A model generated the notes under the pieces. It ran no database searches, was not told where the DNA came from, and saw only the letters and a program-made list of their open reading frames with translations. DNA of 64,000 bases from Macrostomum lignano (taxonomy: Eukaryota), in NCBI GenBank assembly GCA_002269645.1, contig NIVC01003219.1:1-64000 (forward strand). Direction: 5' to 3'. This document shows positions 1 to 36,703 of the stretch, piece after piece (the first letter of the stretch is position 1; each line of letters starts with the position of its first letter). The position numbers and the translations under genes are program-made.

Positions 1-2172
1 CCTCAAACACCCCAAGCCACCGCGTAGCCACCAACCCCTCAACACCGCCAGTCCCGCGTAGACACCACCCCTCAAACACCCCAGCCACCGCGTAGCCACC
101 AACCCCTCAAACACCCCAGTCCCGCGTAGCCACCAACCCCCTCAAACACCCCAGTCCCCGTAGACACCAACCCTCAAACACCCAGTCACCGCGTAGCCAC
201 CAACCCCCTCAAACACCCCAGTCCCCGCGTAGCCAACCCCTCAAACACCCCAGTCCCGCGTAGCCACCAACCCCCTCAAACACCCCAGCCCTTGCGTAGC
301 CACCAACCCCCTCAAACACCCCAGCTTGCGTAGCCACCAACCCCCTCAAACACCCCAGTACTTGCGTAGCCACCAACCCCCTCAAACACCCCAGTCCCGC
401 GTAGACACCAACCCCTCAAACACCCAGTCCCGCGTAGACACCAACCCCCTCAAACACTCCAGTCCCCGCGTAGCCACCAACCCCCTCAAACACCCCAGTC
501 CCCGCGTAGACACCAACCCCTCAAACACCCCAGTCCCGCGTAGCCACCAACCCCCTCAAACACCCCAGTCCCCGCGTAGCCACCAACCCCCTCAAACACC
601 CCAGCCCTTGCGTAGCCACCAACCCCCTCAAACACCCCAGTCCCGCGTAGCCACCAACCCCCTCAAACACCCCAGCCCTTGCGTAGCCACCAACCCCCTC
701 AAACACCCCAGTCACCGCGTAGCCACCACCCCCTCAAACACCCCAGTCCCCGCGTAGCCACCAACCCCCTCAAACACCCCAGTCCCCGCGTAGCCACCAA
801 CCCCCTCAAACACCCCAGTCCCCGCGTAGCCACCAACCCCTCAAACACCCCAGTCCCGCGTAGCCACCAACCCCCTCAAACACCCCAGTCCCGCGTAGCC
901 ACCAACCCCCTCAAACACCCCAGTCCCGCGTAGCCACCAACCCCCTCAAACACCCCAGTCCCGCGTAGCCTCCAACCCCTCAAACACCCCAGTCCCGCGT
1001 AGCCACCAACCCCCTCAAACACCCCAGTCCTTGCGTAGCCACCAACCCCCTCAAACACCCCAGCCCGCGTAGCCACCAACCCCCTCAAACACCCCAGTCC
1101 CGCGTAGCACCAACCCCCTCAAACACCCCAGTACTTGCGTAGCCACCAACCCCCTCAAACACCCCAGTCACCGCGTAGCCACCAACCCCCTCAAACACCC
1201 CAGTCCCGCGTAGCCACCAACCCCCTCAAACACCCCAGTCCCGCGTAGCCACCAACCCCTCAAACACCCCAGTCCCGCGTAGCCACCAACCCTCAAACAC
1301 CCCAGTCCCCGCGTAGCCACCAACCCCTCAAACACCCCAGTCCCGCGTAGCCACCAACCCCCTCAAACACCCCAGTCCCCGCGTAGCCACCAACCCCCTC
1401 AAACACCCCAGTCACCGCGTAGCCACCAACCCCCTCAAACACCCCAGTCCCCGCGTAGCCACCAACCCCTCAAACACCCCAGTCCCGCGTAGCCACCAAC
1501 CCCCTCAAACACCCCAGTCCGCGTAGCCACCAACCCCCTCAAACACCCCAGCCCTTGCGTAGCCACCAACCCCCTCAAACACCCCAGTACCTTGCGTAGC
1601 CACCAACCCCCTCAAACACCCCAGTCCCGCGTAGCACCAACCCCCTCAAACACCCCAGTACGCGTAGCCACCAACCCCCTCAAACACCCCAGTCCCCGCG
1701 TAGCACCAACCCCCTCAAACACCCAGTCCCCGCGTAGCCACCAACCCCCTCAAACACCCCAGTCCCTTGCGTAGCCACCAACCCCCTCAAACACCCCAGT
1801 ACTTGCGTAGCCACCAACCCCCTCAAACACCCCAGCCCCGCGTAGCCACCAACCCCCTCAAACACCCCAGTCCCCGCGTAGCCACCAACCCCTCAAACAC
1901 CCAGTCCCCGCGTAGCCACCAACCCCTCAAACACCCCAGTACTTGCGTAGCCACCAACCCCTCAAACACCCCAGCCCGCGTAGCCACCAACCCCCTCAAA
2001 CACCCCAGTCCCGCGTAGCCACCAACCCCCTCAAACACCCCAGTCCCGCGTAGCCACCAACCCCTCAAACACCCCAGTCCCGCGTAGCCACCAACCCCCT
2101 CAAACACCCCAGTCCCCGCGTAGCCACCAACCCCTCAAACACCCCAGTCCCCGCGTAGCCACCAACCCCTCA
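1..2172. repeat. Minisatellite, ~35-36 bp unit (GTAGCCACCAACCCCCTCAAACACCCCAGTCCCGC), C-rich on + strand; truncated by window start
   Basis: Unit read directly; about 60 copies by span/unit. All ORFs in 326-2107 are translations of this repeat. Confidence 0.97.
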
Positions 2173-3245
2173 ACACTAGAGTCCTCTGAACAACTTAGGC
2201 AGTCACATCGCCCGTCGGTTAAAGTTACGCAGGCATTCAAAGAAGAGCATTGAGCACTTCACACATGCGCCAATATTTCTTTCTACAGCACAATCAAAAA
2301 TACGATCATGTTACTACGTGTACAGCTTGCAAAATTGTTTAACCTGCACATTCACTGGTTTAAAAAGTGTTGTTAAAATTATGTAATTAGTTAAGCTGCA
2401 TCGAAAAAACTACTTTCTGTAACTATATTATTATACTATAATATAATTGGTTACTTAAATTCTCTGCTCCTTTCTGCACTTTTTTCTAAAAGTACACACT
2501 TCACTTTAACACATTGTATTTCATTGTTTGTCACAAAGTTTTTTTTCTTACATTTGAAATTAAATCAAATTAGGTTGTCAGAACGTAAATTGAATTTGCT
2601 GACTGAAATATAAACTTTTTTTATTTATGTAATACTTATAATTCTTTAGTGCAAGTTATGATACATCGGGAAATACCCGATTTGAGAGATTTGGGATCAA
2701 ATGAAAATCTTCAGTGTAAATTAAAAGATACAGAACTTTGCACTTTGCATCGTCCGAAAACATCCATAAACATCAATACAAACCTTTGGAAACATCGTCC
2801 CACAGTTCTGAGACAACACGCTCCTTGGTTGCAAGAATTTAACTTAATACAAAATACAGTGAAATATTCAAAGTTGAGAGTTGAAACGCAATGAGATGAA
2901 GTTCAATCATGAAGTTTCCATGCACCACACACCATGCAGTTTCTCATTCTGTTGAGAAATAAAAAAAATTTATAATTCTTCTGCGCAGAACTTGCGCAGC
3001 GCAGAAGGCTGAGTGAAAGTTCCGAACTTATAAACCGCAGTCGTATAGTTGTTAGCCCTCCACTCGAAATCTCTTTTAAACTGCTGACTTCCAAAAACTG
3101 TGTCTCTACTATATGCGATCTTGCAGTTGGGAAAAATTCTTTTCAAAGTGTCAGTTCGAAATTTGATTTTTTTCAATGCATTCAGAAATGAATTTCTGAA
3201 GATTTTAGAAGCACTGATGCAAAATCTTTCTTTAGGCTCATCCAT

Positions 3246-4935
3246 ATCTATAATGAGTCATGCCTGTCTATAATGAGTCATGTCTGTCTATAATGAGTCA
3301 TGCTTGTCTATAATGAGTCATGCCTGTCTATAATGAGTCATGCCTGTCTATAATGAGTCATGCCTGTCTATAATGAGTCATGCCTGTCTATAATGAGTCA
3401 TGCCTGTCTATATTGAGTCATGCTTGTCTATAATGAGTCATGCCTGTCTATAATGAGTCATGCTTGTCTATAATGAGTCATGCTTGTCTATAATGAGTCA
3501 TGCTTGTCTATAAGGAGTCATGCTTGTCTATAATGAGTCATGCCTGTCTATAATGAGTCATGCCTGTCTATAAAATGAGTCATGCCTGTCTATAATGAGT
3601 CATGCCTGTCTATAATGATTCATGCCTGTCTATAATGATTCATGCCTGTCTATAATGAGTCATGCTTGTCTATAATGAGTCATGCTTGTCTATAATGAGT
3701 CATGCTTGTCTATAATGAGTCATGCTTGTCTATAATGAGTCATGCTTGTCTATAATGAGTCATGCTTGTCTATAATGAGTCATGCTTGTCTATAATGAGT
3801 CATGCTTGTCTATAATGAGTCATGCTTGTCTATAATGAGTCATGCTGTCTATAATGAGTCATGCCTGTCTATAATGAGTCATGCTGTCTATAATGAGTCA
3901 TGCTGTCTATAATGAGTCATGCCTGTCTATAATGAGTCATGCTGTCTATAATGAGTCATGCCTGTCTATAATGAGTCATGCCTGTCTATAATGAGTCATG
4001 CCTGTCTATAATGAGTCATGCCTGTCTATAATGAGTCATGACAGTCTATAATGAGTCATGCCTGTCTATAATGAGTCATGCCTGTCTATAATGAGTCATG
4101 CTTGTCTATAATGAGTCATGCCTGTCTATAATGAGTCATGCCTGTCTATAATGAGTCATGCTTGTCTATAATGAGTCATGCCTCATGCCTGTCTATAATG
4201 AGTCATGCCTGTCTATAATGAGTCATGCTTGTCTATAATTAGTCATGCTTGTTATGAGCCATGCTTGTCTATAATGACTCACGCATGTCTATAATGAGTC
4301 ATGCTTATCTATAGTGAGTCATGACAGTCTATAAGAAGTCATCACTGTCTATAACGAGTCATGACTGTCTATATTGAGTCATGCATGTCTATAATGAGTT
4401 ATGCTAGTCTACGAGTATAATGAGTCATGCAGGTCATACTAATTGGTCATACAGGTAGACACCATACTAATGAGTCGTGGGTGCCACACTAATGAGTCAT
4501 GGGAGCCATACTAATGAGTCAAGGGTGCTATACTTATGAGTCATGGGTGCCATACTAATGAGTCATGGGAGCCATACTTATGAGTAATGGGTGCCATACT
4601 TATGAGTCATGGGTGCCACACTAATGAGTCATGGGAGCCATACTAATGAGTCAAGGGTGCTATACTTATGAGTCATGGGAGCCATACTTATGAGTAATGG
4701 GTGCCATACCAATGAGTCATGGGTGCTATACTAAAGAGTCATGGGTGCTATACTAAAGAGTCATGGGTGCTATACTAAAGAGTCATGGGTGCTATACTAA
4801 AGAGTCATGGGTGCTATACTAATGAGTCATGGGTGCCATACTAATGAGTCATGGGTGCCATACTAATGAGTCATGGGTGCCATACTAATGAGTCATGGGT
4901 GCCATACTAATGAGTCATGGGTGCGCCTTACTAAT
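3246..4935. repeat. Compound minisatellite: 20-bp unit TATAATGAGTCATGCCTGTC (~3246-4430) grading into 22-bp unit CCATACTAATGAGTCATGGGTG (~4480-4935)
   Basis: Periods of 20 and 22 bp are visible; both units keep the core ATGAGTCAT. Confidence 0.96.
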
Positions 4936-6111
4936 GAGTTAGTGGTGGCAGTCACACAGTTACTAGGTCATAAAGAAAATAAGTAGCTTATGTCTAGAAA
5001 TCCTCCTATAGATTAGTACTACACAGGCACAGATGCAGTAATTGCAATCGAATTTTGATCAAAGCATACTTTATAATTATCATAAAGCAAACTAGATTAG
5101 AACGAAGAACGAAGATGACTCTCTCTCTAAGAAACATTCAAATATTTTCTGAATAATCCATTTCCTCGATTGTGTCTCATCTGCTTTCTCATCCCCTAAC
5201 TAAGTTAGCCAGACTTGTTGCATAGTAAACAGTTACATCACTTTTACATCTGTGTCTTCAATTCTAGACCTCAGTTTTTTGGTTTGAAAATTCTATATGC
5301 ATGGAACAGTTTCACTTTTCTTTATGTGCAGCGATCTCAGTCTTAGCATTTCAAACATTTTCGTATTTCAGATTCCGTCAAAATACTTAGTGTACTAAAA
5401 TATGTGACCTGCTTTGCTTCTAGAAGGGTTAATTAACTGTAAAGAAATTCTACATTGATTTCAATTAGCTTTAGGTTATTAATGTAGAACACTGGGGGGG
5501 GGGCAAGAACAGGTGCTGCCGCTGCGCATTCAGTCTCTCGCGAGCTGTTCGCCATGTTGGTCACATTTTATTAGCCACTTTTAAACAAGCCGACCATAAC
5601 GCAGAGCCGCACGGCATGTGTAAAAAGCTCCCTTTCTGCTTTTGCTATTCTGTCTGTAGTTGAATTATTTTATTCAATGTTTGGGCCCTTTTTTATTGTT
5701 CGTGATGGCGGAAATGCGACTTCTGATGAATTTGGCAGTCAGTTGGTGACTCAACTACTATATTTAAAGACAGGCCCGCTGCACACAGCTGGGAACGGTT
5801 AGCTTCAGCTTGAAAACAATTTAGTCGAATATTTCATATAATAGGGTAGAGAATTTATAAAAACTTCAGCACTTTAAAATTGTTAATTTATTTAATGAGT
5901 TTCGTATTGTCATCTTAGTTCGCGATCTACAAGACAGTTACGCTCGTACACAGGTCAGTTTTTTTAAGCTTCTTTTCCTTATTTTGTTCGCAGTTTAAAA
6001 GGTTGCAACTTAGCAACATTCTACTTGTAGTAGAAATATGTGCAAAAATTAGTTCAAATTAAAATTAAATATTTAAATTGATTCATTGAAACAATTCCCA
6101 ATCTCGAAAGT

Positions 6112-14200: not shown

Positions 14201-17200
14201 ATAAATATATCCATTCTTATCATTCCATAAGAATTCTGGCTACCTTTAGTTGCATATTATAAGCTGATTAAATGTTTTTGCGTGATCAAGGTTGGAGCAT
14301 TTTCTTATTATAAAATAAGTGACTACAATCTATTTATGACACTAGATTGATGAAAATTGCTAAAGTAAAGTTGAGAATCACCCAGGTAACAAAGCAAGTC
14401 ATATGCATATTTTGTTTTATCTTTTAACTAGATAAATTTCAATTCTATCTTTAAATTGATAGACCAAAAGTATATAATTATAACTGATAATATAAGAATT
14501 TTTATATAATGATATATAATAAAATAAATAAAATAGAAACAGTATAATAGCTATTGTATATGCATTATTAAAACGATTAAGTTTTTAATAATTAATGTAA
14601 TTAAATCTAATATCCATTTGTTCAATCCTAATAAATGTTTTACAAGTATCAGTTCTAAAAATGTTTATATAGTCAGTTTTTTGAAATCCTAACTTTTTAT
14701 AAATTAACCTTTACTAAATAAACAAAATTTTAGTCGCACATCCTGGCAGCCAAGTCTGTTGCCAATTGTCTGCGAACATCCCTAGGCCCAAAAGGCCTGG
14801 ACAAACTGATGGTCAGTCCAGATGGCGACCTTACTGTTACCAACGATGGCAGAACTATTTTAGAGAAGATGGACGTCGATCATGAGATTGCTAAGCTGAT
14901 GGTGCAGCTCAGCAAATCTCAGGATGACGAGATTGGCGATGGTACCACTGGTGAGTCGGTCTGCTTTTTAGTGGAGAAGATCTGCTTAAATATTGCTCTC
15001 AGATTAGGAGGGTGAGATTCTCATCCCAGTCTTATCTCTAAGAGGTTTAGATTCTCATTCCAGTCTCATCTCTAGAGGGTGAGATTCTTATTCCAGTCTC
15101 ATCTCTAAGAGGATTAGATTCTTATTCCAGTCTCATCTCTAAGAGGTTTAGATTCTTATTCCAGTCTCATCTCTAAGAGGTTTAGATTCTTATTCCAGTC
15201 TCATCTCTAGAGGTTTAGATTCTTATTCCAGTCTCATCTCTAAGAGGATTAGATTCTTATTCCAGTCTCATCTCTAAGAGGATTAGATTCTTATTCCAGT
15301 CTCATCTCTAAGAGGATTAGATTCTTATTCCAGTCTCATCTCTAAGAGGATTAGATTCTTATTCCAGTCTCATCTCCAGAGAGTGAGATTCTCATACCAG
15401 TCTCATCTCTAGAGGGTGAGATTCTTATTCCAGTTTTATCTCTAAAGGGTAAGATTCTCATTCCAGTCTCATTTCTAGCTTAAGGGGTGAGATTCTCATT
15501 CCAGTATTATCTCTAGAGGGTGAGATTCTGATTGTAGTCTCGGCTCTTGGTATGGTTCTCTTTTCAATCTTAACCCATTATAGGGTGAGATTCTCATCAT
15601 GGTCTGAATTGGATACTTTAATATGATTATAGTATAATAATTATAGTACAGTTAAGCAAGTCAGTGGGATGGAAGATTCTCATAAGCCTTTCAACCTGTC
15701 GCAGGCGTGGTGGTCTTGGCCGGAGCCCTGCTGGAACAAGCTGATGTACTGCTAGACAAGGGCATCCACGCTACACGAATCGCCGAAGGCTACGAGCAAG
15801 CCGCCGCCATTGCTATTCGTCATCTGGAGTCCATCGCTGACAAGTTCGAGTTTAGCCGCGATAATAAAGAGCCACTGATCGAGACCGCCATGACCACCCT
15901 GGGCTCGAAGATTATCAACCGGTTGCACCGGAAGTTCGCCGAGATCGCTGTCGACGCTGTCCTATCCGTGGCCGACTTTGAGCGCAAAGATGTCGACTTT
16001 GAATTGATCAAAGTTGAAGGCAAAGTTGGCGGCAAACTGGAAGATTCTATGCTAATCCGAGGGGTCTTGGTGGACAAAGACATGTCCCATCCGCAGATGC
16101 CCAAGCGCGTTTCCGATGCTCGCATTGCCATCCTGACCTGCCCGTTTGAGCCGCCAAAGCCCAAGACTAAGCATTCGCTTCTGGTGCAAACTGTTGAAGA
16201 CTATGAGAAATTGCGCGAGTATGAGCACAATAAATTTGAAGAGATGGTCGACCAGGTGAAGGCTACTGGCGCTAATCTGGTTATCTGTCAGTGGGGCTTC
16301 GACGATGAGGCCAACCATCTGCTGTTGCACAAGCAGCTGCCCGCCGTTCGCTGGGTTGGCGGCCCAGAGATTGAACTTATTGCTATTGCAACTGGCGGTA
16401 GGATTGTGCCCAGGTCAGTTTGGGGGAGAAGATTTGATGGTTATGGTTGATCAGCCCTCTACCTCACTTATTATTGGATTGATCCGCCCCTACCTTACTT
16501 ATTATTGGATTGATCCGCCCCCTACCTCACTTATAATTGGATTGATCCGCCCCCTACCTTACTTATTATTGGATTGATCCGCCCCCTACCTCACTTATTA
16601 TTGGATTGATCCGCCCCCTACCTTACTTATTATTGGATTGATCCGCCCTCTACCTCACTTATTATTGGATTAATCCGCCCTCTACCTCACTTATTATTGG
16701 ATTGATCCGCCCCCTACCTTACTTATTATTGGATTGATCCGCCCCCTACCTCACTTATAATTGGATTGATCCGCCCCCTACCTTACTTATTATTGGATTG
16801 ATCCGCCCCCTACCTCACTTATTATTGGATTGATCCGCCCCCTACCTTACTTATTATTGGATTGATCCGCCCTCTACCTCACTTATTATTGGATTAATCC
16901 GCCCTCTACCTCACTTATTATTGGATTGATCCGCCCCCTACCTTACTTATTATTGGATTGATCCGCCCCCTACCTCACTTATAATTGGATTGATCCGCCC
17001 CCTACCTTACTTATTATTGGATTGATCCGCCCCTACCTCACTTATTATTGGATTGATCCGCCCCTACCTTACTTATTATTGGATTGATCCGCCCTCTACC
17101 TCACTTATTATTGGATTAATCCGCCCTCTACCTCACTTATTATTGGATTGATCCGCCCTCTACCTCACTTATTATTGGATTGATCCGCCCCCTACCTTAC

Positions 17201-20897: not shown

Positions 20898-23800
20898 ATG
20901 ACTCTGCGACTGCAGGCCAGACTGGCTGATGCCCTGGCTTCGGGTGAATTTTATGAAGCTCAGCAGCTTTACAGGACGCTCAGTTTCAGATTGACAGCTC
21001 GCGGCCAATATGACGAAGCGGCCAGTCTGCTGTACAACGGCGCCACAGCTTTACTAAACGAAGGTCTGCATGAAAGTGGCGGCGATCTGGCCTGCCAGAT
21101 GGTGGCAGCGCAGGCCAAATCCACTGCCGAGCCGCCTAGCGTAGAGTTTGTCAGCCGGGTGTCCGCTCTGTGCAGACTGATGAAGCCGGGCTCGCCAGAG
21201 AGGGAAATGCTCACTGCTAAGTGAGTAGTATTGTTGATTTCTGATTCTGCTAAAATAGGTTCTGTCACACTTTGATCATCTCTGACCCATTATCATCATC
21301 TTATGACCCACTATGCTAGTCATCTCATGACCCATTATTATAATCTTATGACCCACTATGCTAGTCATCTCATGACCCATTATTATCATCTCATGATTCA
21401 CTATGATAGTCATCTCATGACCCACTATGATAGTCATCTCATGACCCTCTATGAGAATCATCTCATGACCCACTATGATAGTCATCTTATGACCCGCTAT
21501 GATAGCCATCTCATGAACCGCCATGATAATCATCTCATGACCTACTTTGATAGTCATCTTATGACCCTCTATGATAATCATCTCATGACCCACTATGATA
21601 GTCATCTTATGACCCGCTATGATAGTCATCTCATGAACCGCCATGATAATCATCTCATGACCTACTTTGATAATCATCTCATGAACCGCCATGATAATCA
21701 TCTCATGACCTACTTTGATAATCATCTCATGACCCACTATGATAGTCATCTCATGAACCGCCATGATAATCATCTCATGACCTACTTTGATAGTCATCTC
21801 ATGACCCACAATGATAGTCATCTCATGAACCGCCATGATAATCATCTCATGACCCACTATGGTAGTCATCTCATGACCCACTATGATAGTCATCTCATGA
21901 ACCGCCATGATAGTCATCTCATGACCCACAATGATAGTCATCTCATGAACCGCCATGATAATCATCTCATGACCTACTTTGATAATCATCTCATGAACCG
22001 CCATGATAATCATCTCATGACCTACTTTGATAATCATCTCATGAACCGCCATGATAATCATCTCATGACCTACTTTGATAATCATCTCATGACCCACTAT
22101 GATAGTCATCTCATGAACCGCCATGATAATCATCTCATGACCTACTTTGATAGTCATCTCATGACCCACAATGATAGTCATCTCATGAACCGCCATGATA
22201 ATCATCTCATGACCCACTATGGTAGTCATCTCATGACCCACTATGATAGTCATCTCATGAACCGCCATGATAGTCATCTCATGACCCACAATGATAGTCA
22301 TCTCATGAACCGCCATGATAATCATCTCATGACCCACTATGGTAGTCATCTCATGACCCACTATGATAGTCAACGAATCCCACTTGTACGAGGGGTGATC
22401 AAAAAGTTCTGCAACCTTTTGTTATAGCTTTTAGTTATAGAATCAGCAAAAGCCGAAAACTTACACATATGCGGCTATATCTGTTTGCTATATTTATATG
22501 CATTTTTGGCTTCCAAATGTGCCCCAGTAAAATTTCACAGCCATATATTTTCCATGTGTTTTCAGTAGCTGATGGAAACATCAAAAGACAGTGTTCGCTT
22601 CTATATCTTTATGTGCATGCAACTTGGTTGCAAAGTGACTGATATTCACACCATGTTTTGTGAATGTTTTAGCTGACTCTGCTCCATCATTTGACACGGT
22701 TGCCCGCTGGCTGCGCCATTTCTTGGAAGGCTGGGACAGCTTCAACGATGAACCGAGGTCTGGCCGACCCCGGACATCCGTGACCGAAGATGTCGTGGCC
22801 CATGCCGATGCAATAATTCGTGAGGATTGGAGCATTATGCTGAGATTCCTTGCCTATGAGCTTGGTGTCAGCTATGGAAGTGCTCATAACATCATGCATG
22901 AGCAACTAGGCTGCACAAAGACTTGCGCTCGGTGGGTACCCCATCTTCTCACTCCGGAGCAACAAGCAGAGAGGGGGCGCACCTGTCGCTTGTGGCTGCA
23001 AATGTTTGAGCCCCACGGCCCACGACAACTGTCGGATGTCATCATAGGAGACAAATGTTGGATCTCCTTTTACCATGAAGGATAAGCAGTCCAACATGGT
23101 CTGGCTAGCAGAAGATGAGCCAAGGCCTGAGGTGCTGAAGACCGGATTCCGCAGTCGGAAGCGGATGTTCACCATTTTTTCAACTCTCAGGGTGTTGTAT
23201 CGGTGAACATCCTTCCAGCGGGTGCCACAGTGACTGCCAGGTACTACACAGACACTGTTCTGCCAGGCGTGCTGCAGGAGCGGCAGGAACGTGCGCGAAC
23301 CAGGCATGGACCTCGACTCCTGCTGCACCATGACAATGTGGCACCGCACAGAGCGGCATCAACCATGGCGTACCTGGAGCAGCAGGGGGTCCGGCTGCTG
23401 CCCCATCCACCCTACTCTCTAGACCTAGCACCTTCCGACTTTTGGCTGTTCCCGAGGATCAAATCCGTCGTTTCTGGGAGGCCGTTTTCACGCATGCAAG
23501 ACTTTGCCCAAGCGGTACATTCAGCTCTACAGGGTATACCAACTTCGGAGTACCATGACTGCTTTCAGACATGGTGCACACGGATGCGACGGTGCATAGA
23601 TAGTGGTGGAAAGTACTTTAAGGGAATGTGACACTGATTAGACGCCTCGGCTGCTGTAGCACAGAGTTGTGAGGTCACTTGCAGAACTTTTTGATCACCC
23701 CTCGTAATTGTCAATCATTACCAAATCAACCACATTCGCATAACATTACAGTTACAAGTACATTGCATGCGACACTGTTTCCATAAGCTATAATCTGCAT

Positions 23801-24460
23801 AATTCATTAATCCTACTCAGATCCATCGAACTACTGAAGCCTCATCAAGAATTAAAGCAACAATTGCACCGAGAATTCGGCTTCAATTATTGGATTGAAC
23901 GAAACTACAGCCTGTCCCAGTATCATTTTGTACGATCTAGCGATGCCGGCTATCATTTCGGTCGCATGCTAGTGGAGTACAGTCAGTTAGGTTACAAATC
24001 CGAGGTCGACTTGTTCCTTGCCCTCACCGTGTTGCAATTGTTGTGCTTAAAAAAGCTATCGCCAGCATCCGTGTGCTTCTACACGTACACTCGACATCAT
24101 CCGAGTCTGCTTAGGACTCAAGCGCCGCCTTATCCGTCAAATTATCCGTTGTTAAATTTCACCTGGCTATTATTAATGTCTATTCGTTCCAATTGGCCGC
24201 TGTCGTGTTTTCAATACCTGTGCCAGGTGTACAGGGCACCGCTAGATCGGGATCCAATCTGTGGTGAATATCTCATCAAAATTAGTCAGCTATTCTTCGG
24301 CGTACCAGCTGAGAAGCCTGACCAGTCTGGTGGATTCTTTGGTAGTATTATGCGAATGCTCGCTACTGATGATGCGGCTCTGGATGCTGAGGATGCGGAG
24401 GGGTCAGATCCCGGCGCCAACCACAATGCTGTCTCGCTGAAGGCTGACGATATGGACTGA
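20898..24460 (+). CDS. GET4: Golgi to ER traffic protein 4 homolog (GET4/TRC35), 320 aa; join(20898..21220,23821..24460)
   Basis: Motifs GEFYEAQQLYRTL, SPERE, HFVRSSD, GYKSEVDLF, QLLCLK, YPLLNFTWLLL, RDPICGEYLIKISQLFFG and an acidic C-terminus ending DDMD match GET4. Phase-2 intron AA|GTGAGT..CAG|A; 963 nt in frame. Confidence 0.93.
21276..22370. repeat. 24-bp minisatellite (CATCTCATGACCCACTATGATAGT) in the GET4 intron
   Basis: About 45 copies. It generates the spurious 365-aa and 374-aa repetitive ORFs. Confidence 0.96.
22389..23704 (+). mobile_element. Tc1/mariner (DD34D) DNA transposon, 1316 bp, irritans-subfamily-like, in the GET4 intron
   Basis: Perfect 26-bp TIRs CGAGGGGTGATCAAAAAGTTCTGCAA, with a TA duplication on both sides (22387-22388, 23705-23706). 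Transposase motifs WVPHLL, IGDKCW, HHDNVAPH and YSLDLAPSDF. Confidence 0.96.
22572..23631 (+). pseudogene. Mariner transposase interrupted by three frameshifts (~22655, ~23078, ~23178)
   Basis: METSKDSVRFYIF... continues in the frame of ORF 22660-23085, then DKQSNMVW...RKRM, then ORF 23203-23631. Two of the shifts lie in T homopolymers, so they could be sequencing errors. Confidence 0.85.
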
Positions 24461-26492: not shown

Positions 26493-28305
26493 AAATTCTA
26501 TAAAGTGCTCCGAAGCTCGAATATAAAGGACACTGGAATTTTCTTATACTCGTAAAATGCCCTAGATGAACTTCTGTGAAAGTAAATGTTCCCTATGAAA
26601 CGTTCCGAGAGTTACTTATATGACAGAGTCGTTAATAATTATTCATTAACCAAGTCAAATTGAATCAACAAAAGCTAGTATTTATGCTATTATAAATTTA
26701 GTTTATCGTGTATTTGAGTCTTAAGAACAAACAGAGTGAGTATGCACAGTAATTTGATAGTTAGTGTCACAATAAAATTTCTCGATTTCACTGTATGATT
26801 ATATATTGTACTTCTTTGACTGTTAGAGAAGCAATATGATTAAGCCAGCACAGTATTTTAGTAGCAATTATAATAAAAAATAAAAAATCAGATGTTTAAA
26901 ATGAAAAATGTACCCAAAAATAATTACAGCAGCTTTTCTAAGAAATAACTTACTTCTCATGGAACGGCGAGACTTAAAAATATTCAAATTGCACAAAAGC
27001 TTGAAAAGATAAATTATTTGTCATAAAATATTGTATGCTTTGATTAATTATGTAAAATATGTTTTATATTTTTATTACTCTAAAATGTGTAGATGTCAAT
27101 TATTTAACTGTATTTATATACGATACTTAATATGTAATCACAGAGTTAAGGACGCCACTAACAGTTATAAGAATGGATGACAAAGTGACAAATAGTTTAA
27201 TAGCAGCTTATAAGTCAATGGAAGATGCAATTATGATTTCTGATGTCTAAAAGTAAAAATAGTATTTTTGTCTATGGCCAAAAACATGAACAACAACATG
27301 GCTATGTCCTCAATATTTCTTTTAAAATCCTGTTTGTACTGGTAAGTGAAGAAGCCAAAGCAGTTGAAGAGTCAAAAGTACTAATTATACAATAACGATT
27401 GCGTAATGCGCTCTGCATATAGAAAAATTACAAACAGCTGTTATCAACTGGCCAGTGACTTTTTTAAAGGATATTTTTACCAAGTAACTTGTATTCCGTG
27501 GGATCAGAGAATTGCACAAAAATATGAGTACAAAATTGGCTAATTTTTCCGAGAAGAATACATATATCTGATGCAGCTTTGTATCGACGCTAATAGCCTG
27601 ATTAGCTTAGCCAAAAGACAATGCGTCTTTAGCTGTCAGACCTTCAATCTGCATATCTAATTCCAACTAAACTATCCATTTCGGAAAAAATGAAGCAAAA
27701 ATACAGATTGCACGCATGATGGACTAGGGGCCACAACATTCAAGTAGCAAATACAATTTTTAGCTACAGTACTATTCAGAATTGATCAATTTAGTTGCTA
27801 TAAACTACTCAAAAACAGCAAGCATGGTAAATAGTGTGCATATAAAGTACAATTGCAAAATAGTATAGGCATGCTTAATTATTTATATTGCACTGAGATA
27901 GCAGTCAACATATAGCTATGTAGCTACGCTACCTGTAATACATTTCTACTATTGCTTGAAACCTTAATCTTGAGTGCTAATATTTTATATACATATTCTA
28001 ATTGCAAGTTCATAACAATTTGGTTTAATACATCTGTATTTACTACTGTATATTAAGCTTATGTACCCTGAAGATCACTGAACCTCTCAGAACGGACCAA
28101 CCTCAAGCACACAGTTCTGTGAACTGTCATCTTCTAAGTCCAAGAATAACAAACATAACTTTGGAAAAACCTTGAATCGAAATTCCTACATCTAAACTTC
28201 TAAAAGAAGACTTCTCTTTATTTAAATTTTCGCACGTACCTGAGGCTTTCCGTTCGAGTGGAATAATAGAAGCTGGGTCCGCACTGTTACAGCCACATAA
28301 CTGCA

Positions 28306-31300
28306 TTATGCTATCAAACACTTTGAACGTTTCCGATGCCTCAACTTTCTCACCGGCTTGAGCACACAGATTCGTCGCCTAGTGCACACCAGGATTTTGT
28401 CCTCGCCCAGCGGCGCTATCCCAGTGATCTCGTCCAGCTCTTGCAGAAACTGCAGCCGCTGGACGAAAATGAACTCGCTCCTTCTGATCACCCAGAACAG
28501 CCTCTGGCGCTGGTTATCCGTGAAGATAATTCTCTTGTCGCTTGTAGTGATGATATGCGCCGGTACTGAATCAAAGATCTGAGTTGTTGTCAGCTTTCTG
28601 TACACTCCGGTTCTGTCATTCACAATCAGGATGTGACCTTCTGCTGGGCAGGAGACCCACAGCATCTTGCGCTCGCGTGTCCAGGTGACGTACTGCGGAT
28701 GCAGATTCTCGAAGGTGAACCAGTGCCCCGTGCGGCCCAGGCAGGGGGTGAAGAACTCCACTTTCTGATCCGACGGCTGCGCCACCACCATGTCGCCGCG
28801 TCGACTGTCGACGAAGAAACCGGCAAACAGCGGCTCGTCTCTGCTGCCACCGGGCCGTTCGATCCGTTTGACCACCTGACCGTCCAGCTGCAGACAGGCG
28901 ACCACGGATAACCAGCCAGTTGGGGCTCCCGTAGAGTCTGCAGCTTGCTGCTGCTGCTGCTGCTGAGCCACTCCGCTGACATAAACCAGACCGTTCACCA
29001 GCCGCATGTGATGGCACTGCAGCCTGCCTCCCGGGTTCGAATCTCCAATCAGCACCGGCAGGTCTTTGATTTGGCCTTCCTGGCTAGAATAGACTAGCAG
29101 CGATCTTGAGCAGCTGTTCAGCAGCACCAGCTCCGCCTGGTCAGTTGAGCCATCCGCGTCAGCCAGCAGTCCGGCCGCACCGATCTCCAGTTCGCCGCGA
29201 GTCGATTGGAGCAGCTCGGCGCAGGTTCCCATATCGATCTCCTTCATCTTGTAGCTGCTATTTCGCTTCATATTGTGCCTGATGAAGCTCAGATCCAGGG
29301 CGTCCTCAGCATCCGAGCTGTCGCTGCCACCGCCGCCACCGCCGCCGCCGCTGCCGCTTCGAATTTCGTCAAGATCGACATCGTTGAGGTGGTCGTTGAC
29401 GGTCGGGTAGCGAGCTGCGGCAGCGGACGCGGCGCCGAACTGATGATGATGCTGGTGCGCTCCAGCTGTCGCCGCCTCCATTGCGTCCTGCAGTTTCTGC
29501 GAGCGACTCTCTGCGTCGTCCAGCCGAGTGATCAACTTGTTGAGATTCTCGCGCACCGCCAGCAGCTCGGCCTTGTCGAATTCGCTCATCAGCGACATGC
29601 CGGCGCCGCCGCCCAGACCGCCGGCTCCGACCTCCTCAGAGCGTCGGACAAAATCCTCGGCCAGATGGGCCAGGATCTCCTGCTTGCGCTCAAGGCTGCG
29701 CTTCCGGCTGCCGCCGCTGCCGCCGCTGAAGACGCCGCTGCTTCGACCTCTCGGACTGCCGATGCTCGAGGCGACTGCGGCAGCGGCATCGGCTGCGGCG
29801 GCAACTGCCGCAGCAGCTCCACCCTCGGTTGAGGCCTCTCCGCCGCTGCCGCTGCCACGGCTGCCGCCGCCGCCAGGTAACTGCAGCCTGCGACACTGCC
29901 TGTCTACAATGTACTTGATGATCGACTGGTGCACATGCGCCGGCGGCAGGCAGCGCAGACCCCCCGCTGGTAGTCGGGCTTCAACGCGGCATAGCGGACA
30001 GGGGAATCTGTCTCTGCTAGGCTGCTGGCTGTCCCACTTCTCCAGGCAGGTGAGGCAGAACACGTGAGAACAGTTGAGCAGTTTGGGCTCGTGCAGACGG
30101 CCCAGGTGAATCGGGCAGGTGGTCAGGTCTTCCAGGGATTCGATGCTGCCGCTGCTAGAGGACGAACTGGCGCAGCTGGGCTGCAAGTAAGACCATATAC
30201 GTAAGGGGTTACAGGGTTGATAATATTGAGTTACTATTGAGTAGCTCAGCGATAATATTGCACTAAGAAATTGGCTAACCAACTGAAACAAGCTACTTAG
30301 TTATTCCCGGTTGTAAGTAGTATCTGATATGATACGAGCCATTTAGTTAATTGTTCTTTGCGGATCTGGAACTGGGGATCTGGAACTGGGGATCTGGAAC
30401 TGGGGATCTGGAACTGGGGATCTGAAACTGGGGATCTGAAACTGGGGATCTGGAACTGGGGATCTGGAACTGGGGATCTGGAACTGGGGATCTGGAACTG
30501 GGGATCTGGAACTGGGGATCTGGAACTGGGGATCTGGAACTGGGGATCTGGAACTGGGGATCTGGAACTGGGGATCTGGAACTGGGGATCTGGAACTGGG
30601 GATCTGGAACTGGGGATCTGAAACTGGGGATCTGGAACTGGGGATCTGATCGAAACTGGGGATCTAATCGAAACTGGGGATCTGAAACTGGGGATCTGGA
30701 ACTGGGGATCTGGAACTAGGGATCTGGAACTGGGGATCTGGAACTGGGGATCTGGAACTGGATCTAACTGGATATCTGGATCTAGAAAAGAAATTACTTT
30801 TCCTATCTTGGACAGCTGTTGCTAGGAATTTAGGATTTTCGCATGCTTATGCTACTAAATCCGCTTGTAAATAGTAGTGCACGGAACAAGATTGCAAGGT
30901 AGAAATGTGTCCTGCCAGAGGAACCGCAGCACACACACACCATTAATTAGGAATGCAATGTTTTGTATGTATCAGACAGCCATATAAAGCATGAACATGC
31001 TTGTAATTTAATAGCTACATTCTGCGAGTAAATGAACCCCTTCAAACTCTTATAACGAGGCTATCGTTAGGGCTTGTTAACTAAAGCCATTAGCCGGAGC
31101 TGTTGTGTTGAATGCTTGTCTAATTGGGGAACATAAGAGAGACTATCGACACTGGGAATGTTGCATGAACTCTATTCTCAAGGCTCAACTTGGCCTTTTT
31201 CTCACAGTTTTTTTCTCTAGACTGATGGAAGAGTTACATGCAGCCTACAAAGAAACCGGTTTTTACCAGCTACCTACTACACGTACTAAACAGTTTACAT

Positions 31301-34166
31301 AGTACATAGTAAACTTGAAATGAGATGGTCTGCAGCAAAGGGCATGCGAAACTCTCTCTATGTGTATGTTTTTGGTACTGAATATAGAAATTATTCTCTA
31401 CATTTATTGGAGAGACCAAACTCTGTTTACCCGAGCTCTGCACTGCAACTTTGTATTGATTCTTCCCACGAGTCAGTGCAACAGAAGCGGCAGTGCGTGG
31501 ACAATATATATTCCACACGTTTAGTTTGATTGAGTTTTCTGTGTGCGTGCGTGTGCCGATTCTGTTTTGTGTATGATATTTTCGTTATTTATGTACTTTT
31601 GCAACTGAAGTGAGACGAGAGAGAGAAGGGATAGTGAAGGGAGAGAGAAGAGAGAATGGAGAGAAGAGGAGAGGGAATCAAGAGAATGGAGAGAAGGAGA
31701 GAGAAGGGGAGAGGGAAGGGAGAGAAGGAAAGAGAAGGGAGGAGAAGGGCGAGATAGAAAAGAGAGAAGGGACAGAAGGGAGAGAGAATATGGAGAGAAG
31801 GGGAGAGAATCATGAGAAGGGGAGAAGGGGAAAGAGAAGGAAAGAGAGAAGGGAAATAAGACGAGAGAGTATTGAGAGAAGGGGAGAAAGAAGGGAGAGA
31901 ATGGGAGAAAGAAAGAGAGAAAAGGGAGAGAGAGAAGGGAGGGAAGAGAGAGAAAAGGAAGAGAGAGAAGGGAGGGAAGGGATAGAAAAGGGAGAGAGAG
32001 AAGGGAGGGAAGGGAGAGAAAAGGGAGAGAGAGAAGGGAGGGAAGGGAGAGAAAAGGGAGAGAGAGAAGGGAGAGAAAAGGAAGAGAGAGAAGGGAGGGA
32101 ATTGGGAAAGAAGGGGCAGAGGGGATCGAGGAGGGACAAAAGGGGGGGAATTGGGAAAGAAGGGACAGAGGGGAGAGAAGAGAGCAAAGAGAGGGACGAG
32201 AACACAATGGAACAGAATCCAGCTTTACCAGCTCAAATAAATATCAGTGTGCAGCAAGCAGTGTTAGCAACTGAAACGCATGCAGTGCTTATAGATTTTT
32301 TAAAACTAATTCTAACTGATATAGACAGTATAAAAACAGAACCTATAGCTACATGTAATTTTTTACAGGTATAGACAAGCACTTGGCTTGAATTCAGCGA
32401 TATACTCGCGTAGTTACAATCGAAACAATAGCAAACAAATTCTACCTAGATATAGAATTGAACTCTAACCCGAAGCGCTGTTCTGCGTGTGCTATAGCTA
32501 GAACTGATAAGAATTCCCCTACAAGTCCAACTCTTGTCTCTCACTTTTGTCTGTTCCTCCCTTCTCTGCCCTCTTCTAAAATAAGATTGCAGAAATAAAA
32601 AACTAATCTGTGTGTTTGTGTGTGTGTGCGTCTGCATTGCGGTGACCCCGTCAGCCCTTTGGTATCAGCAAATTTCAATGCACAATGGACTTGCTTTACT
32701 AGACTAAAAGATAAGGTGTTTACTATCGGATAGACTCCAGGTCAAGACTGCACAAACCCGAATGAACTATAACAGGCTTTGGTTAAACAACTTCTGCTTA
32801 TTCAGGTTGGATCAGGGGAATTCAGGTTGGATTGGGGGAATTCTGGTTGGATCAGGGGAATTCAGGTTGGATTGGGGGAATTCAGGTTGGATCAGGGGAA
32901 TTCAGGTTGGATTGGGGGAATTCTGGTTGGATCAGGGGAATTCAGGTTGGATTGGGGGAATTCAGGTTGGATTGGGGGAATTCAGGTTGGATTGGGGGAA
33001 TTCAGGTTGGATTAAGGGAATTCAGGTTGGATTGGGGGAATTCAGGTTGGATTGGGGGAATTCAGGTTGGATTGGGGGAATTCAGGTTGGATTAGGGGAA
33101 TTCAGGTTGGATTAAGGGAATTCAGGTTGGATTGGGGGAATTCAGGTTGGATTGGGGGAATTCAGGTTGGATTGGGGGAATTCAGGTTGGATTAGGGGAA
33201 TTCAGGTTGGATTAAGGGAATTCAGGTTGGATTGGGGGAATTCAGGTTGGATTGGGGGAATTCAGGTTGGATTGGGGGAATTCAGGTTGGATTAGGGGAA
33301 TTCTGGTTGGATTAAGGGAATTCAGGTTGGATTGGGGGAATTCAGGTTGGATTGGGGGAATTCTGGTTGGATCAGGGGAATTCAGGTTGGATTGGGGGAA
33401 TTCAGTTTGGATCGGGGGAATTCTGGTTGGATTGGGGGAATTCTGGTTGGATCAGGGGAATTCAGGTTGGATTGGGGGAATTCAGTTTGGATCGGGGGAA
33501 TTCTAGTTGGATTGGGGGAATTCTGGTTGGATCAGGGGAATTCAGGTTGGATTGGGGGAATTCAGGTTGGATTGGGGGAATTCAGGTTGAGTTGGAGGAA
33601 TTCTGGTTGGATCAGGGGAATTCAGGTTGGATTGGGGGAATTCAGGTTGGATCGGGGGAATTCAGGTTGAGTTGGAGGAATTTAGATTAAATTTGGGGGG
33701 CTTCAGATTGAATCGGAGGGAATTCAGATTGAACCGAGGGAATCGAGATTGAACTATGGGAATTCAGATTGAACCCGGGGAGTTCAGATTGAACCCGGGA
33801 GTTCAGATTGAACCGGGGGAATTCAAATTGAACCGAGGGAATTCAGATTGAACCGGGGGAATTCAGATGGAACCGGGAGAATTCAGATTGAACCGGGAGA
33901 ATTAATATTAAACTGGAGGGATCATTCAATTTGAACCGAGGGAATTAAGAATGAATTTTGATAAATTAAACTACTTGAAGAATTTACCGCAATCCTTTAG
34001 TACCGTTAAGAAGGTTCCGAAGAGTATAAATGAAAATACCCCCTTAGCAACCAGATTAACATAGCAGAATAGCAAGCATAGAGTGGTAGCCATCATCTAC
34101 CTGATCGCAGACGCAGGACGTTGAAGAGCCAGCTGCATCATCCGCGGCTTCGCAATCGCTTTCCAT
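28306..34166 (-). CDS. RING-finger / coiled-coil / NHL-like beta-propeller protein (TRIM-NHL-like, no B-box seen) with C-terminal polybasic-CaaX; proposed complement(join(28306..30180,34101..34166)), 646 aa
   Basis: Long ORF 28306..30291 with a TRIM2/3-type RING (CPIH...[15 protein letters not shown]...CPLCR..LP.GG), a helical middle segment, and beta-rich repeats ([31 protein letters not shown]). The ORF's first 37 codons look intronic (TCTTACTTGCAG acceptor ending at 30181). A phase-0 upstream exon [22 protein letters not shown]|GTAGAT at 34166-34101 fits but is inferred. Confidence 0.75.
30362..30780. repeat. 14-bp minisatellite (TGGAACTGGGGATC) in the RING-gene intron
   Basis: About 29 copies, read directly. 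Confidence 0.95.
31612..32205. repeat. GA-rich low-complexity tract
   Basis: Nearly pure purine; the source of the E/R/G-rich and S/L/P-rich spurious ORFs. Confidence 0.9.
32801..33950. repeat. 20-bp minisatellite (GGGGGAATTCAGGTTGGATT), degenerating after ~33690
   Basis: 20-bp period read directly. Confidence 0.95.
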
Positions 34167-34500: not shown

Positions 34501-35270
34501 CGTGTACTCAGTTACACCTCTCACCCTCCACTTCTCCTCTCTACCCAACCCCCCCCCCCTGTATTTCAGTTTGTAGTTAAGGCGAGGGAACTGCGTGTGT
34601 TCTCTCCTCTCCTCTCCTCTCCTCTCCTCTCCTCTGTCTCCGCGCTCTGGGTTGGTGGCAATCAAGTAGTACAGCTCGTTAGGTCAAACCAATAGTTAGG
34701 ATCTGCTATACACCAGCGCGTACTATTAGGCCTTGGTAGTAGTGCTGCCTGCCTATTGGCTAATGCCGTATTGGGGGAAAGACAGACAGAAAGACGGAGT
34801 ACGCGGCAGGCTTGTGTGTTTTTCCCTTTCTCTCTCTCTCTCTCTCTATCTCTCTCCCCTCTCCACTGCCCATAGTCCAGTTGCAGGCGCAGATATACAG
34901 GCCCTATACCACACGATGCTGCTACGCATATAAACATTCAGATAGAATGATAGATGAAATGCAAACAGCACACTTCGATGGAGTCTGCCGGGTTGGACCG
35001 ATCGTGTCCTTAAAACCCCGGTGTGTTTCCGGGGGAGCAGGAATTCTGTGCTGTTTATAGGTTTCCCCAGAGAACATTTGAAAATAAAATTGCAGTGGCT
35101 ACAAGTAACAGCTGGGGCTAAATTATTTTATGTTGCAGGATCTTTTTTTACAGCTGTCTTGGTTTTGTTTACACTGCGAACAATTTATTGGTAGGGTAAT
35201 AAAAGTACATGGCAGTAAATACCTATAAACTTATGGCTTAGTAACTATAATCTGGGAGTGTAGCGGGTGG

Positions 35271-36703
35271 CCCAGCAACTGAGAATCTGGGAGACTGGCC
35301 AAGCAACTGACACTCTGGGAGGCTGACCCAGCAACTGAGGATCTGGGAGGCTGGCACAGCAACTGAGGATCTGGGAGGCTGGCACAGCAACTGAGGATCT
35401 GGGAGGCTGGCACAGCAACTGACACTCTGGGAGGCTGACCCAGCAACTGAGGATATGGGAGGCTGGCCCAGCAACTGAGGATCTGGAAGGGTGACCCAGC
35501 AACTGACACTCTGGGAGGCTGACACAACAACTGAGGATCCGGGAGGCTGACAAAGCAACTGAGGATCTGGGAGGCTGGCCCAGCAACTGAGGATCTGGAA
35601 GGGTGACCCAGCAACTGACACTCTGGGAGGCTGGCCCAGCAACTGACACTTTGGGAGGCTGGCCCAGCAAGTGAGGATCTGGGAGGCTGGCCCAGGAACT
35701 GAGGATCTGGAAAGGTGACCCAGCAACTGAGAATCTGGGAGACTGGCCCAGCAACTGAGGATCTTGAAGGGTGACCCAGCAACTGAGGATCTGGAAGGCT
35801 GACCAAGCAACTGAGGATCTAAGAGACTGGTCCAGCAACTGAGGATCTGGAAGGGTGACCCAGCAACTGACACTCTGGGAGGCTGGCCCAGCAACTGAGG
35901 ATCTGGGAGGCTGGCCCAGCAACTGAGGATCTGGAAGGGTAACCCAGCAACTGAGAATCTGGGAGACTGGCCCAGCAACTGAGGATCTGGAAGGGTGACC
36001 CAGCAACTGAGGATCTGGAAGGGTGACCCAGCAACTGAGAATCTGGGAGACTGGCCCAGCAACCGAGGATCTGGGAGACTGGCCTAGCAACTGAGGATCT
36101 GGAAGGCTGGCCCAGTAACTGGGGATCTTGGAGGCTGGTCCAGCAAGTGAGGATCTGGGAGGCTGGCCCAGTAACTGGGGATCTGGGAGGCTGGCCCAGT
36201 AACTGGGGATCTGGGAGGCTGGCCCAGCAACTGAGGATCTGGAAGGGTGACCCAGCAACTGAGGATCTGGGAGGTTTGTCCAGCAACTGAGGATCTGGGA
36301 GGCTGGCCCAGCAACTGAGGATCTGGAAGGGTGACCCAGCAACTGAGAATCTGGGAGACTGGCCCAGCAACTGAGGATCTGGGAGACTGGCCCAGCAACT
36401 GAGGATCTGGGAGACTGGTCCAGCAACTGAGGATCTGGGAGACTGGCCCCGCAACTGAGGATCTGGGAGGCTGGCCCAGTAACTGGGGATCTGGGAGGCT
36501 GGCCCAGTAACTGGGGATCTGGGAGGCTGGCCCAGCAACTGACACTCGGGAGACTGGTCCAGCAAGTGAGGATCTGGGAGGCTGGCCCAGCAACTGACAC
36601 TCTGGGAGGCTGGCCCAGCAACTGACACTCGGGAGACTGGCCCAGCAACTGAGGATCTGGGAGGCTGTCTCAGCAACTGACTCTCTGGGAGGCTGGCCCA
36701 GCA
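35271..36703 (-). repeat. 28-bp minisatellite (CCCAGCAACTGAGGATCTGGGAGGCTGG), reverse complement of the 24573-25103 array
   Basis: About 51 copies with several unit variants. Confidence 0.95.

Follow-up and report, generated by a model that had tools for sequence, protein, structure and literature searches.

The TRIM-NHL proteins TRIM2, TRIM3, TRIM32/Thin, TRIM71/LIN-41, Mei-P26 and NHL-2 combine a TRIM-type RING, a helical region and a six-bladed propeller (Brat is a TRIM-NHL protein that lacks the RING), and we know of no familiar member of this group that has a CaaX box at its C-terminus. Here we describe a gene of the free-living flatworm Macrostomum lignano, located on the minus strand of contig NIVC01003219.1 within the 64,000-nucleotide (nt) stretch that is referred to throughout as the window, whose product shares these three elements with the TRIM-NHL proteins and has blade motifs that resemble the NHL repeat of TRIM71. 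Unlike them, the window protein and its family have no B-box and no filamin domain, a possible coiled coil that some members lack or have only in short form, a propeller that the Pfam NHL model does not match and a CaaX box at the C-terminus. The pairing of a RING with NHL repeats and no B-box already has an example in malin/NHLRC1, a soluble protein that comprises a RING and six NHL repeats and has no CaaX; the shortest members of the present family, such as P0011, resemble it in this minimal architecture.

The closest parallels to the C-terminal tail are found in K-Ras4B and Rac1, with which the window protein shares 7-8 Lys or Arg (K/R) in the 10-13 residues before the CaaX Cys, the lack of an upstream palmitoylatable Cys, and disorder. 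The X residue, Ala in the paralogue group of the window gene (A) and Met in a second group (B), points to farnesylation, as in the K-Ras4B type of anchor. What carries the tail here, however, is a RING-propeller protein and not a GTPase, and the polybasic stretch is kept only between groups A and B. Lipid anchors also occur within the ubiquitin system. ZNRF1/2, RNF11, MGRN1 and NEURL1 are N-myristoylated RING ligases, and thus likewise lipid-anchored, otherwise soluble RING ubiquitin ligases (E3s), but their lipid is an N-terminal myristate and their substrate-binding domains are unrelated to the propeller described here. Legionella AnkB and plant MUB are further prenylated components of the system. 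The F-box proteins FBXL2 and FBXO10 are prenylated (geranylgeranylated) receptors of Skp1-cullin-F-box (SCF) ligases, in which the CaaX box directs ligase activity to membranes (PMC9988375, PMC11573457). FBXL2 also uses palmitoylation of a nearby Cys, as may the CCVVM and C-E-CNFL tails of the window family. Both are cullin-RING substrate receptors that lack a RING of their own, whereas in the window family the lipid signal is on the RING-bearing polypeptide.

The RING, the propeller and the C-terminal tail

Read on the minus strand, positions 28306-28347 are AAG TTG AGG CAT CGG AAA CGT TCA AAG TGT TTG ATA GCA TAA and the protein ends in CLIA-stop, with Cys643 exactly four residues from the C-terminus, Ile at position a2, Ala at X and no second Cys within the last 12 residues. 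Eight of the 13 residues that precede Cys643 are K/R, the densest such segment in the protein against a background K+R content of 11.3% (P ~2e-5 per segment, ~0.01 over all segments). The CaaX prenyltransferases are tolerant at a1, which is exposed to solvent, and recognise a hydrophobic residue at a2, and the identity of X chooses between farnesyltransferase (FTase) and geranylgeranyltransferase type I (GGTase-I), FTase accepting A, M, S, Q and C, and GGTase-I accepting L and F; because X is Ala, CLIA is assigned to the farnesyltransferase type. The tail is predicted to be accessible. AlphaFold2 (AF2) models were calculated for the full-length protein, with a 20-sequence alignment, and separately for the C-terminal domain (~300 amino acids, aa); the predicted local distance difference test score (pLDDT) is below 50 for residues 638-646 in the former and ~50 for the last 10-12 residues in the latter. 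As a lead only, we mention that Ser641, in the context RKRSKC, occupies what we take to be the position of the regulatory phospho-Ser of K-Ras4B and RhoA; it is Pro in paralogue group B.

The RING follows the ligand pattern C-x2-H-x11-C-x-H-x2-C-x2-C-x15-C-x2-C, ending in CPLCR, and thus contains seven canonical zinc ligands together with His47 (30106-30108, minus strand) at the second position, plausibly a full set of eight in cross-brace spacing. Three Pfam models are matched above their cut-offs (zf-C3HC4_4, zf-RING_UBOX and zf-C3HC4), and no other Pfam domain is found in the protein. Searched against the sequences of the PDB, the RING region matches TRIM39 best (E 8e-9), followed by TRIM30, 31, 2, 5, 32, 34 and 3 (to 1e-5), and then by TRIM56 and BRCA1. 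Free-living and CaaX-bearing members of the family all have His as the second ligand, whereas most trematode and cestode members have Asp; Cys never occurs there. One member of the trematode/cestode clade retains His at this position, and the resulting C-H/D-C-H-C4 variant is unusual on a TRIM-type scaffold. Also conserved in the alignment are the Ile of C-P-I, the W/Y of C-L-x-x-W and the Arg of C-P-x-C-R, which we take to be the linchpin positions and those contacting the ubiquitin-conjugating enzyme (E2) in c-Cbl, RNF4 and TRIM25. We infer that the window protein is a RING E3 ligase.

Between the RING and the propeller lie predicted long helices, a possible coiled coil, flanked by low-complexity Gly/Ala/Ser linkers; in the alignment the helices are absent or much shorter in the short members P0011, P0015 and P0008. 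The stretch from the RING to the helices is either Gly/Ala/Ser-rich and of low complexity or very short, and no B-box is present, there being neither a B-box among the Pfam matches listed for 20 members nor a Cys/His cluster between RING and helices in any member. Nor is there an F-box among the Pfam matches. The family core is RING - propeller - CaaX.

In the full-length model residues 330-632 are all-beta with pLDDT mostly above 90, and the preceding helix, residues 310-328, is conserved. The domain-only model (pLDDT 87, predicted template modelling score (pTM) 0.87) consists of six four-stranded blades, with an N-terminal strand, 331-337, that closes blade 6. Among the best matches of a Foldseek search of the PDB, and taking most of its leading ranks at 12-16% identity, are NHL domains, those of Thin (TRIM32), TRIM71/LIN-41, Mei-P26, Brat, TRIM2 and NHL-2. 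The top hits, to Thin, TRIM71, Lin41, Mei-P26 and Brat, have E values of 7e-11 to 3e-9 and template modelling scores of 0.51-0.59 over the query (TMq) and 0.47-0.69 over the target (TMt, lower for the longer filamin-NHL chains of Lin41). Vgb lyase, YncE and Pizza6/PknD, which are six-bladed propellers of other kinds, come close behind, and because they score nearly equally the match is one of fold class and is not uniquely to NHL. When the blades are aligned an NHL-like pattern, P-x-H-I-x-x-T-x-D-x-R-I-x-F-x-D, becomes visible, and one member of the family matches the Pfam family DUF5128, itself a 6-bladed propeller family; a phmmer search of the propeller against PDB sequences returned nothing meaningful.

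The original prediction, made from the DNA alone, had described an RING-NHL-like ligase with no B-box whose reading frame ends in a CaaX box after a strongly basic stretch. The minus-strand reading and the K/R density bear out the description of the tail, the RING is of TRIM type by its best PDB sequence matches, and the B-box is missing from every member. The NHL-like propeller holds at the level of the modeled fold and not at that of the sequence profile. Taken together, "RING-NHL-like without B-box" is a fair description of a protein that is not a TRIM by definition and whose NHL membership, as judged from the models, is fold-level only.

Conservation of the C-terminus in flatworms

In order to find relatives the C-terminal 332 aa were compared by phmmer, in an exhaustive HMMER search, with 1.84 billion cluster representatives, giving 15 proteins at E<=1e-3, 13 of which reach E<=1e-10. 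A word-indexed search is nearly blind to this family: the full exon-2 product retrieved only its own protein plus paralogue B, probably because low-complexity words swamped the candidates; a query with the 315-aa C-terminal domain of the latter retrieved nothing, not even its source protein; and a 15-sequence family alignment retrieved 3 proteins. Every homologue that bears an organism name belongs to the Platyhelminthes, the others being contigs from Logan, JGI and MetaClust, and the family appears, from these matches, to be restricted to flatworms. M. lignano has three paralogue groups, each with homoeologous copies, and the other named members come from the monogeneans Protopolystoma and Cichlidogyrus, the trematodes Trichobilharzia, Opisthorchis and Clonorchis, and the cestodes Spirometra and Sparganum.

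A Cys at position -4 is found in 12 of 16 cluster representatives, and in 11 of these it is part of a full CaaX grammar (the twelfth is the CGKL of Trichobilharzia). The 11 endings are all distinct: CLIA, CDLM, CELL, CVVM, CNFL, CNIL, CRIL, CNLL, CNLS, CNVL and CSLL. While a1 is variable (L, D, E, V, N, R or S), a2 is always I, L, V or F, and X is L in seven cases, M in two, and A and S in one each. Only 11 columns of the 20-sequence alignment show complete conservation or a conservation of 90% or more, and the CaaX Cys is one of them; the linker that precedes it is conserved neither in sequence nor in length. A lone CaaX box could have arisen by chance, but chance is no explanation for 11 tetrapeptides that obey the grammar, which is evidently under selection across flatworms.

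Another view of the tail is obtained by comparing the window gene with paralogue B (BOX15_Mlig004309g3, 615 aa, 56% identical to the window protein), for which the corresponding DNA reads AAG CCG ACG CGT AAG CTG CGA AGG CGG AGG CGA CCT CGC TGC GAC CTG ATG TGA and encodes K-P-T-R-K-L-R-R-R-R-R-P-R-C-D-L-M-stop (RKLRRRRRPRCDLM), with a codon number equal to that of the window gene. The two genes are old, with synonymous divergence (dS) of ~1.3 over the exon and, for the propeller, dS of 1.30 and nonsynonymous divergence (dN) of 0.175. Only 24 of the 51 bases of the final 17 codons are shared, and past the stop the 3' untranslated regions are unalignable (31% identity with gaps). Both tails nevertheless keep their length, their charge (K/R at 8 versus 9 of 13 positions), the Cys at -4 and the position of the stop. 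Because these features survive saturated synonymous divergence, the codon-level comparison argues that the tail is preserved by selection on the peptide. The same kind of ending is shared by the homoeologous copy P0030 and by three more paralogue proteins, and unbroken open reading frames (ORFs) on short (~2 kb, transcript-sized) Logan contigs terminate in CaaX.

The polybasic stretch behaves differently. A strong version of it is limited to groups A (8/13) and B (9/13) of M. lignano, with 1-5 K/R among the 13 residues in other homologues. An extra Cys is present in two lineages, at -5 (CCVVM) or at -6 (C-E-CNFL/CNIL), the classical place for palmitoylation as a second membrane signal. Outside groups A and B the second signal is likely to be the extra Cys, or nothing obvious. 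The -L tails of most relatives (C-x-[ILVF]-L) are of the GGTase-I type, and both the lipid and the second signal are therefore predicted to vary between lineages. On this comparison it is the CaaX box itself that is the conserved feature, farnesyl plus polybasic being a lineage-specific elaboration in the window gene.

In a neighbor-joining (NJ) tree built from the propeller domain a single clade takes in the four homologues without CaaX (Opisthorchis/Clonorchis, Spirometra, Cichlidogyrus and a trematode-like protein ending in ...SCLK), and all other branches keep the box; Trichobilharzia, with a fifth non-canonical tail, was left out of the alignment used for the tree. The simplest history suggested by the tree is that CaaX is ancestral and was lost or replaced once. 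The proteins of Opisthorchis/Clonorchis (P0013, P0024 and P0025) and of Spirometra/Sparganum (P0014, P0028 and P0029) lack CaaX yet have conserved, Cys-rich tails, for which S-acylation in place of prenylation, or mis-called 3' exons, are possible explanations.

These comparisons support the original prediction, and more strongly than the DNA alone could show, because CaaX is kept across the family; in part they also qualify it. That homologues keep a terminal CaaX is true of most of the family and fails in one clade of parasitic flatworms, and the likeness to the polybasic-CaaX signal of K-Ras, though well founded for the window gene itself (8/13, no second Cys), is confined to two paralogue groups of M. 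lignano. As for the stop codon, for which a check had been proposed, its position is kept in the old paralogue and the gene model is based on RNA sequencing (RNA-seq).

A proposed membrane-tethered ligase and the alternatives

With moderate confidence we favor a reading in which the family represents a flatworm-specific, prenylated, membrane-tethered RING E3 made up of a TRIM-type RING, a variable linker, a propeller and a disordered CaaX tail, and thereby probably a hitherto undescribed type of membrane-tethered ligase. We infer the prenylation of Cys643, the target membrane, the E3 activity and the propeller ligand from sequence and structure prediction, as follows. Farnesyltransferase would alkylate Cys643 of CLIA, -LIA would then probably be removed, and the Cys would be carboxyl-methylated via the standard CaaX pathway. 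The farnesyl group and the adjacent polybasic stretch, with a charge of +8, would hold the protein on acidic membranes of the inner leaflet, in the manner of K-Ras4B and Rac1; there the propeller would recruit a ligand or substrate and the RING would recruit ubiquitin-loaded E2 (E2~ubiquitin). Should the helices dimerise as they do in TRIMs, each dimer would possess two anchors. For relatives with a final -L the expected lipid is geranylgeranyl, joined in some of them by palmitate.

A number of observations weigh against this proposal. With regard to the propeller, the Pfam NHL model (PF01436) is unmatched in 20 members at E<=1, and a family profile run against PDB sequences places TRIM71 and NHLRC2 first at an E value of only ~0.2. 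The second zinc ligand of the RING is His or Asp, and not Cys. The polybasic stretch is not kept in homologues beyond groups A and B, and it may just as well serve as a nuclear localisation signal (NLS). Finally, not all tails are good CaaX boxes. Trichobilharzia ends in ...CLNLCGKL, with Lys at a2; canonical CaaX is missing in the opisthorchiids (Opisthorchis/Clonorchis, ...DCTSIFSC) and in Spirometra (...GCCSWPS); the final 12 residues of the Cichlidogyrus protein contain no Cys; one trematode-like homologue ends in ...SCLK; and two M. lignano paralogue groups have an acidic residue at a1 (CDLM and CELL), which may make their tails poorer prenylation substrates. To judge by their endings, the anchor is dispensable or has been replaced in the lineages lacking canonical CaaX.

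Several alternatives have to be considered in light of these results. The tail might not be coding at all, if the true exon ended ...AAGCCG/GTGAGA (28353/28354) and the 16 codons up to TAA were intron read-through, that is, an artefact of annotation. Following CCG as it does, GTGAGA looks like a metazoan 5' splice site, and its use as a donor would turn the whole polybasic-CaaX tail into intron. Paralogue B, however, has ACGCGT in place of GTGAGA and so no GT, yet its tail is unchanged in length, in charge, in the Cys at -4 and in the stop; the homoeologous copy, the further paralogues and the Logan ORFs end in CaaX as well; and the GenBank model was built on an RNA-seq assembly, with an AATAAA 84 nt after the stop. 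The annotation of this assembly is genome-guided, with gene boundaries set by trans-splicing and poly(A) (T-fill) data (PMC5730564). The paralogue DNA, the comparison codon by codon and the fact that the annotation was derived from RNA-seq lead us to reject read-through as very improbable.

More serious are two readings that accept the tail as protein. In one of these the protein is prenylated and membrane-bound and yet is no active ligase, its RING being structural and its function that of a scaffold or an RNA regulator acting through the propeller, like the RING-less TRIM-NHL relative Brat. The first ligand pair, C-x2-H (C-x2-D in most trematode and cestode members) as opposed to C-x2-C, would fit such a role, as would the fact that the closest propeller structures are the RNA-binding NHL domains of Brat, LIN-41/TRIM71 and Mei-P26. 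Zinc can, however, legitimately be bound by His and Asp, the RING scores above the cut-offs of three Pfam models and is modeled with pLDDT above 90, and the Ile (CPI), W/Y and Arg (CPxCR), putative contacts to E2~ubiquitin, are conserved family-wide, so that we regard an inert RING as unlikely. The other possibility, to which we assign a similarly low probability, is that the tail is no lipid anchor but an NLS or an extension that binds nucleic acid or phosphoinositides, with the Cys kept for zinc, for a disulfide or for S-acylation only. The basic linker R633-K642 does fit a classical monopartite NLS, and one clade of homologues keeps a Cys near the end and not at -4, consistent with S-acylation or some other role; since most homologues are without the basic stretch, however, an NLS cannot be the conserved feature. 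Outside that one clade every lineage has the Cys precisely at -4, with nothing but I/L/V/F at a2 and nothing but residues permitted by a prenyltransferase at X. This, along with the free a1 and the free upstream linker, is CaaX grammar and would be unexpected for a zinc-binding or disulfide Cys.

A wider version of the membrane-tethered ligase proposal, which we consider evenly balanced between true and false, would make this the first RING E3 family with its own C-terminal isoprenoid anchor. The family would be derived from TRIM-NHL proteins and restricted to flatworms, with CaaX ancestral, with diversification of the lipid type and of the second signal (polybasic, palmitoyl-Cys or none), with a single loss in a parasitic clade, and with paralogues partitioned between membrane compartments.

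The locus, its surroundings and the significance of the family

The gene appears in the window as a 661-codon minus-strand ORF, 28306..30291, that is 100% identical to GenBank PAA52542.1 / BOX15_Mlig023823g1, a protein of 646 aa that is also CLIA-terminated. A tblastn search of the window with the protein, together with inspection of the sequence, establishes two exons with canonical splice sites, Table 1; the 5' part of the ORF is intronic and the first 22 codons are supplied instead by the upstream exon. The two-exon gene is transcribed.

Table 1. Coordinates of the gene, its signals and the predicted regions of its product (positions in the window)
Feature	Position	Strand	Evidence or remark
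Coding exon 1, Met1-Gln22	34101..34166	-	tblastn, sequence; followed by GT donor, CAG/GTAGAT
Intron, GT...AG, 3.9 kb	30181..34100	-	acceptor ttacttgcAG/CCC, AG at 30181-30182, polypyrimidine before it
Coding exon 2, Pro23-Ala646 and TAA stop (28306-28308)	28306..30180	-	100% identity to PAA52542.1
TRIM-type RING, residues 44-86	29989..30117	-	Pfam, PDB sequence matches, AF2 pLDDT >90
Long helices, residues 180-211 and 222-261, possible coiled coil	29464..29709	-	AF2 pLDDT 65-80
Six-bladed NHL-like beta-propeller, residues 330-632	28351..29259	-	AF2, Foldseek against PDB, family alignment
GTGAGA, codons Val632-Arg633	28348..28353	-	5' splice-site look-alike after CCG; chance match
Polybasic linker, R633-K642	28321..28350	-	sequence; predicted disordered
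CaaX box, Cys643-Leu-Ile-Ala646	28309..28320	-	sequence; Cys643 nearly invariant in family alignment
AATAAA, likely polyadenylation signal	28217..28222	-	84-89 nt past stop

The intron of the RING gene is largely minisatellite, with arrays at 30362-30761, 31619-32101 and 32800-33945. The units include a 14-nt repeat, GGATCTGGAACTGG (x28), a GA-rich array of 9-11-nt units that extends over ~480 bp, and a 20-nt repeat, ATTCAGGTTGGATTGGGGGA (x53), as well as a 99-nt higher-order repeat. Two long ORFs, 30358-30621 and 31521-32374, are spurious and represent translations of these intron minisatellites. Similarly, the long overlapping ORFs at 35245-36676 (minus strand) and 21276-22427 (both strands) occupy several frames or both strands with no credible Pfam match, and at least those at 35245-36676 coincide with a 28-nt tandem array that begins at 35268; the ORFs of both regions are most likely repeat-derived and not genes.

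Elsewhere in the window the terminal exon of GET4 (Golgi-to-ER traffic protein 4; 23864-24460, plus strand, Pfam E 1e-34) is convergent with the RING gene and lies 3.8 kb from its stop, and an exon of a TCP-1/CCT chaperonin is found at 15707-16450 (plus strand, Pfam E 2.5e-65). The very start of the contig, window positions 1-2173, is a C-rich tandem array of a 35-nt unit, CCTCAAACACCCCAGTCCCGCGTAGCCACCAACCC (x62), with a GC content of 64% and a GC skew of -0.65. Two adjacent arrays, at 3247-4404 (20 nt x58) and 4462-4939 (22 nt x22), have different units and a common core, AATGAGTCATG, in which lies a palindromic site of the AP-1/GCN4 type, TGAGTCA, so that ~80 copies are packed into 1.7 kb. 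Neither transfer RNAs (tRNAs) nor Rfam families were found in the 64,000 nt.

In the literature that we searched no paper joins TRIM-NHL and prenylation, the combination of CaaX with "tripartite motif" returns only papers that use green fluorescent protein (GFP)-CaaX markers, and the M. lignano gene identifiers are unmentioned; they are also absent from the supplementary tables of PMC5816591. The propeller of the family has no Pfam model, and the family, which includes members from medically relevant flukes and tapeworms, is wholly uncharacterised. Since a TRIM-NHL-like ligase and a CaaX anchor are each well understood, the conceptual step is a modest one, and the prenyl-targeted E3 is not new as a concept. 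Such targeting has so far been documented for F-box receptors (FBXL2, FBXO10) and not for a RING-bearing TRIM-like protein. Working transgenesis is available in M. lignano (PMC5730564) and RNA interference (RNAi) has been used in the species (PMC5816591), so that the prediction is directly testable. If it is true, CaaX on a RING-propeller ligase would be a new way to place E3 activity on membranes, and the flatworm family would provide a natural series of tails, farnesyl with polybasic, geranylgeranyl alone, and prenyl with an extra Cys, in which the evolution of such signals could be followed.

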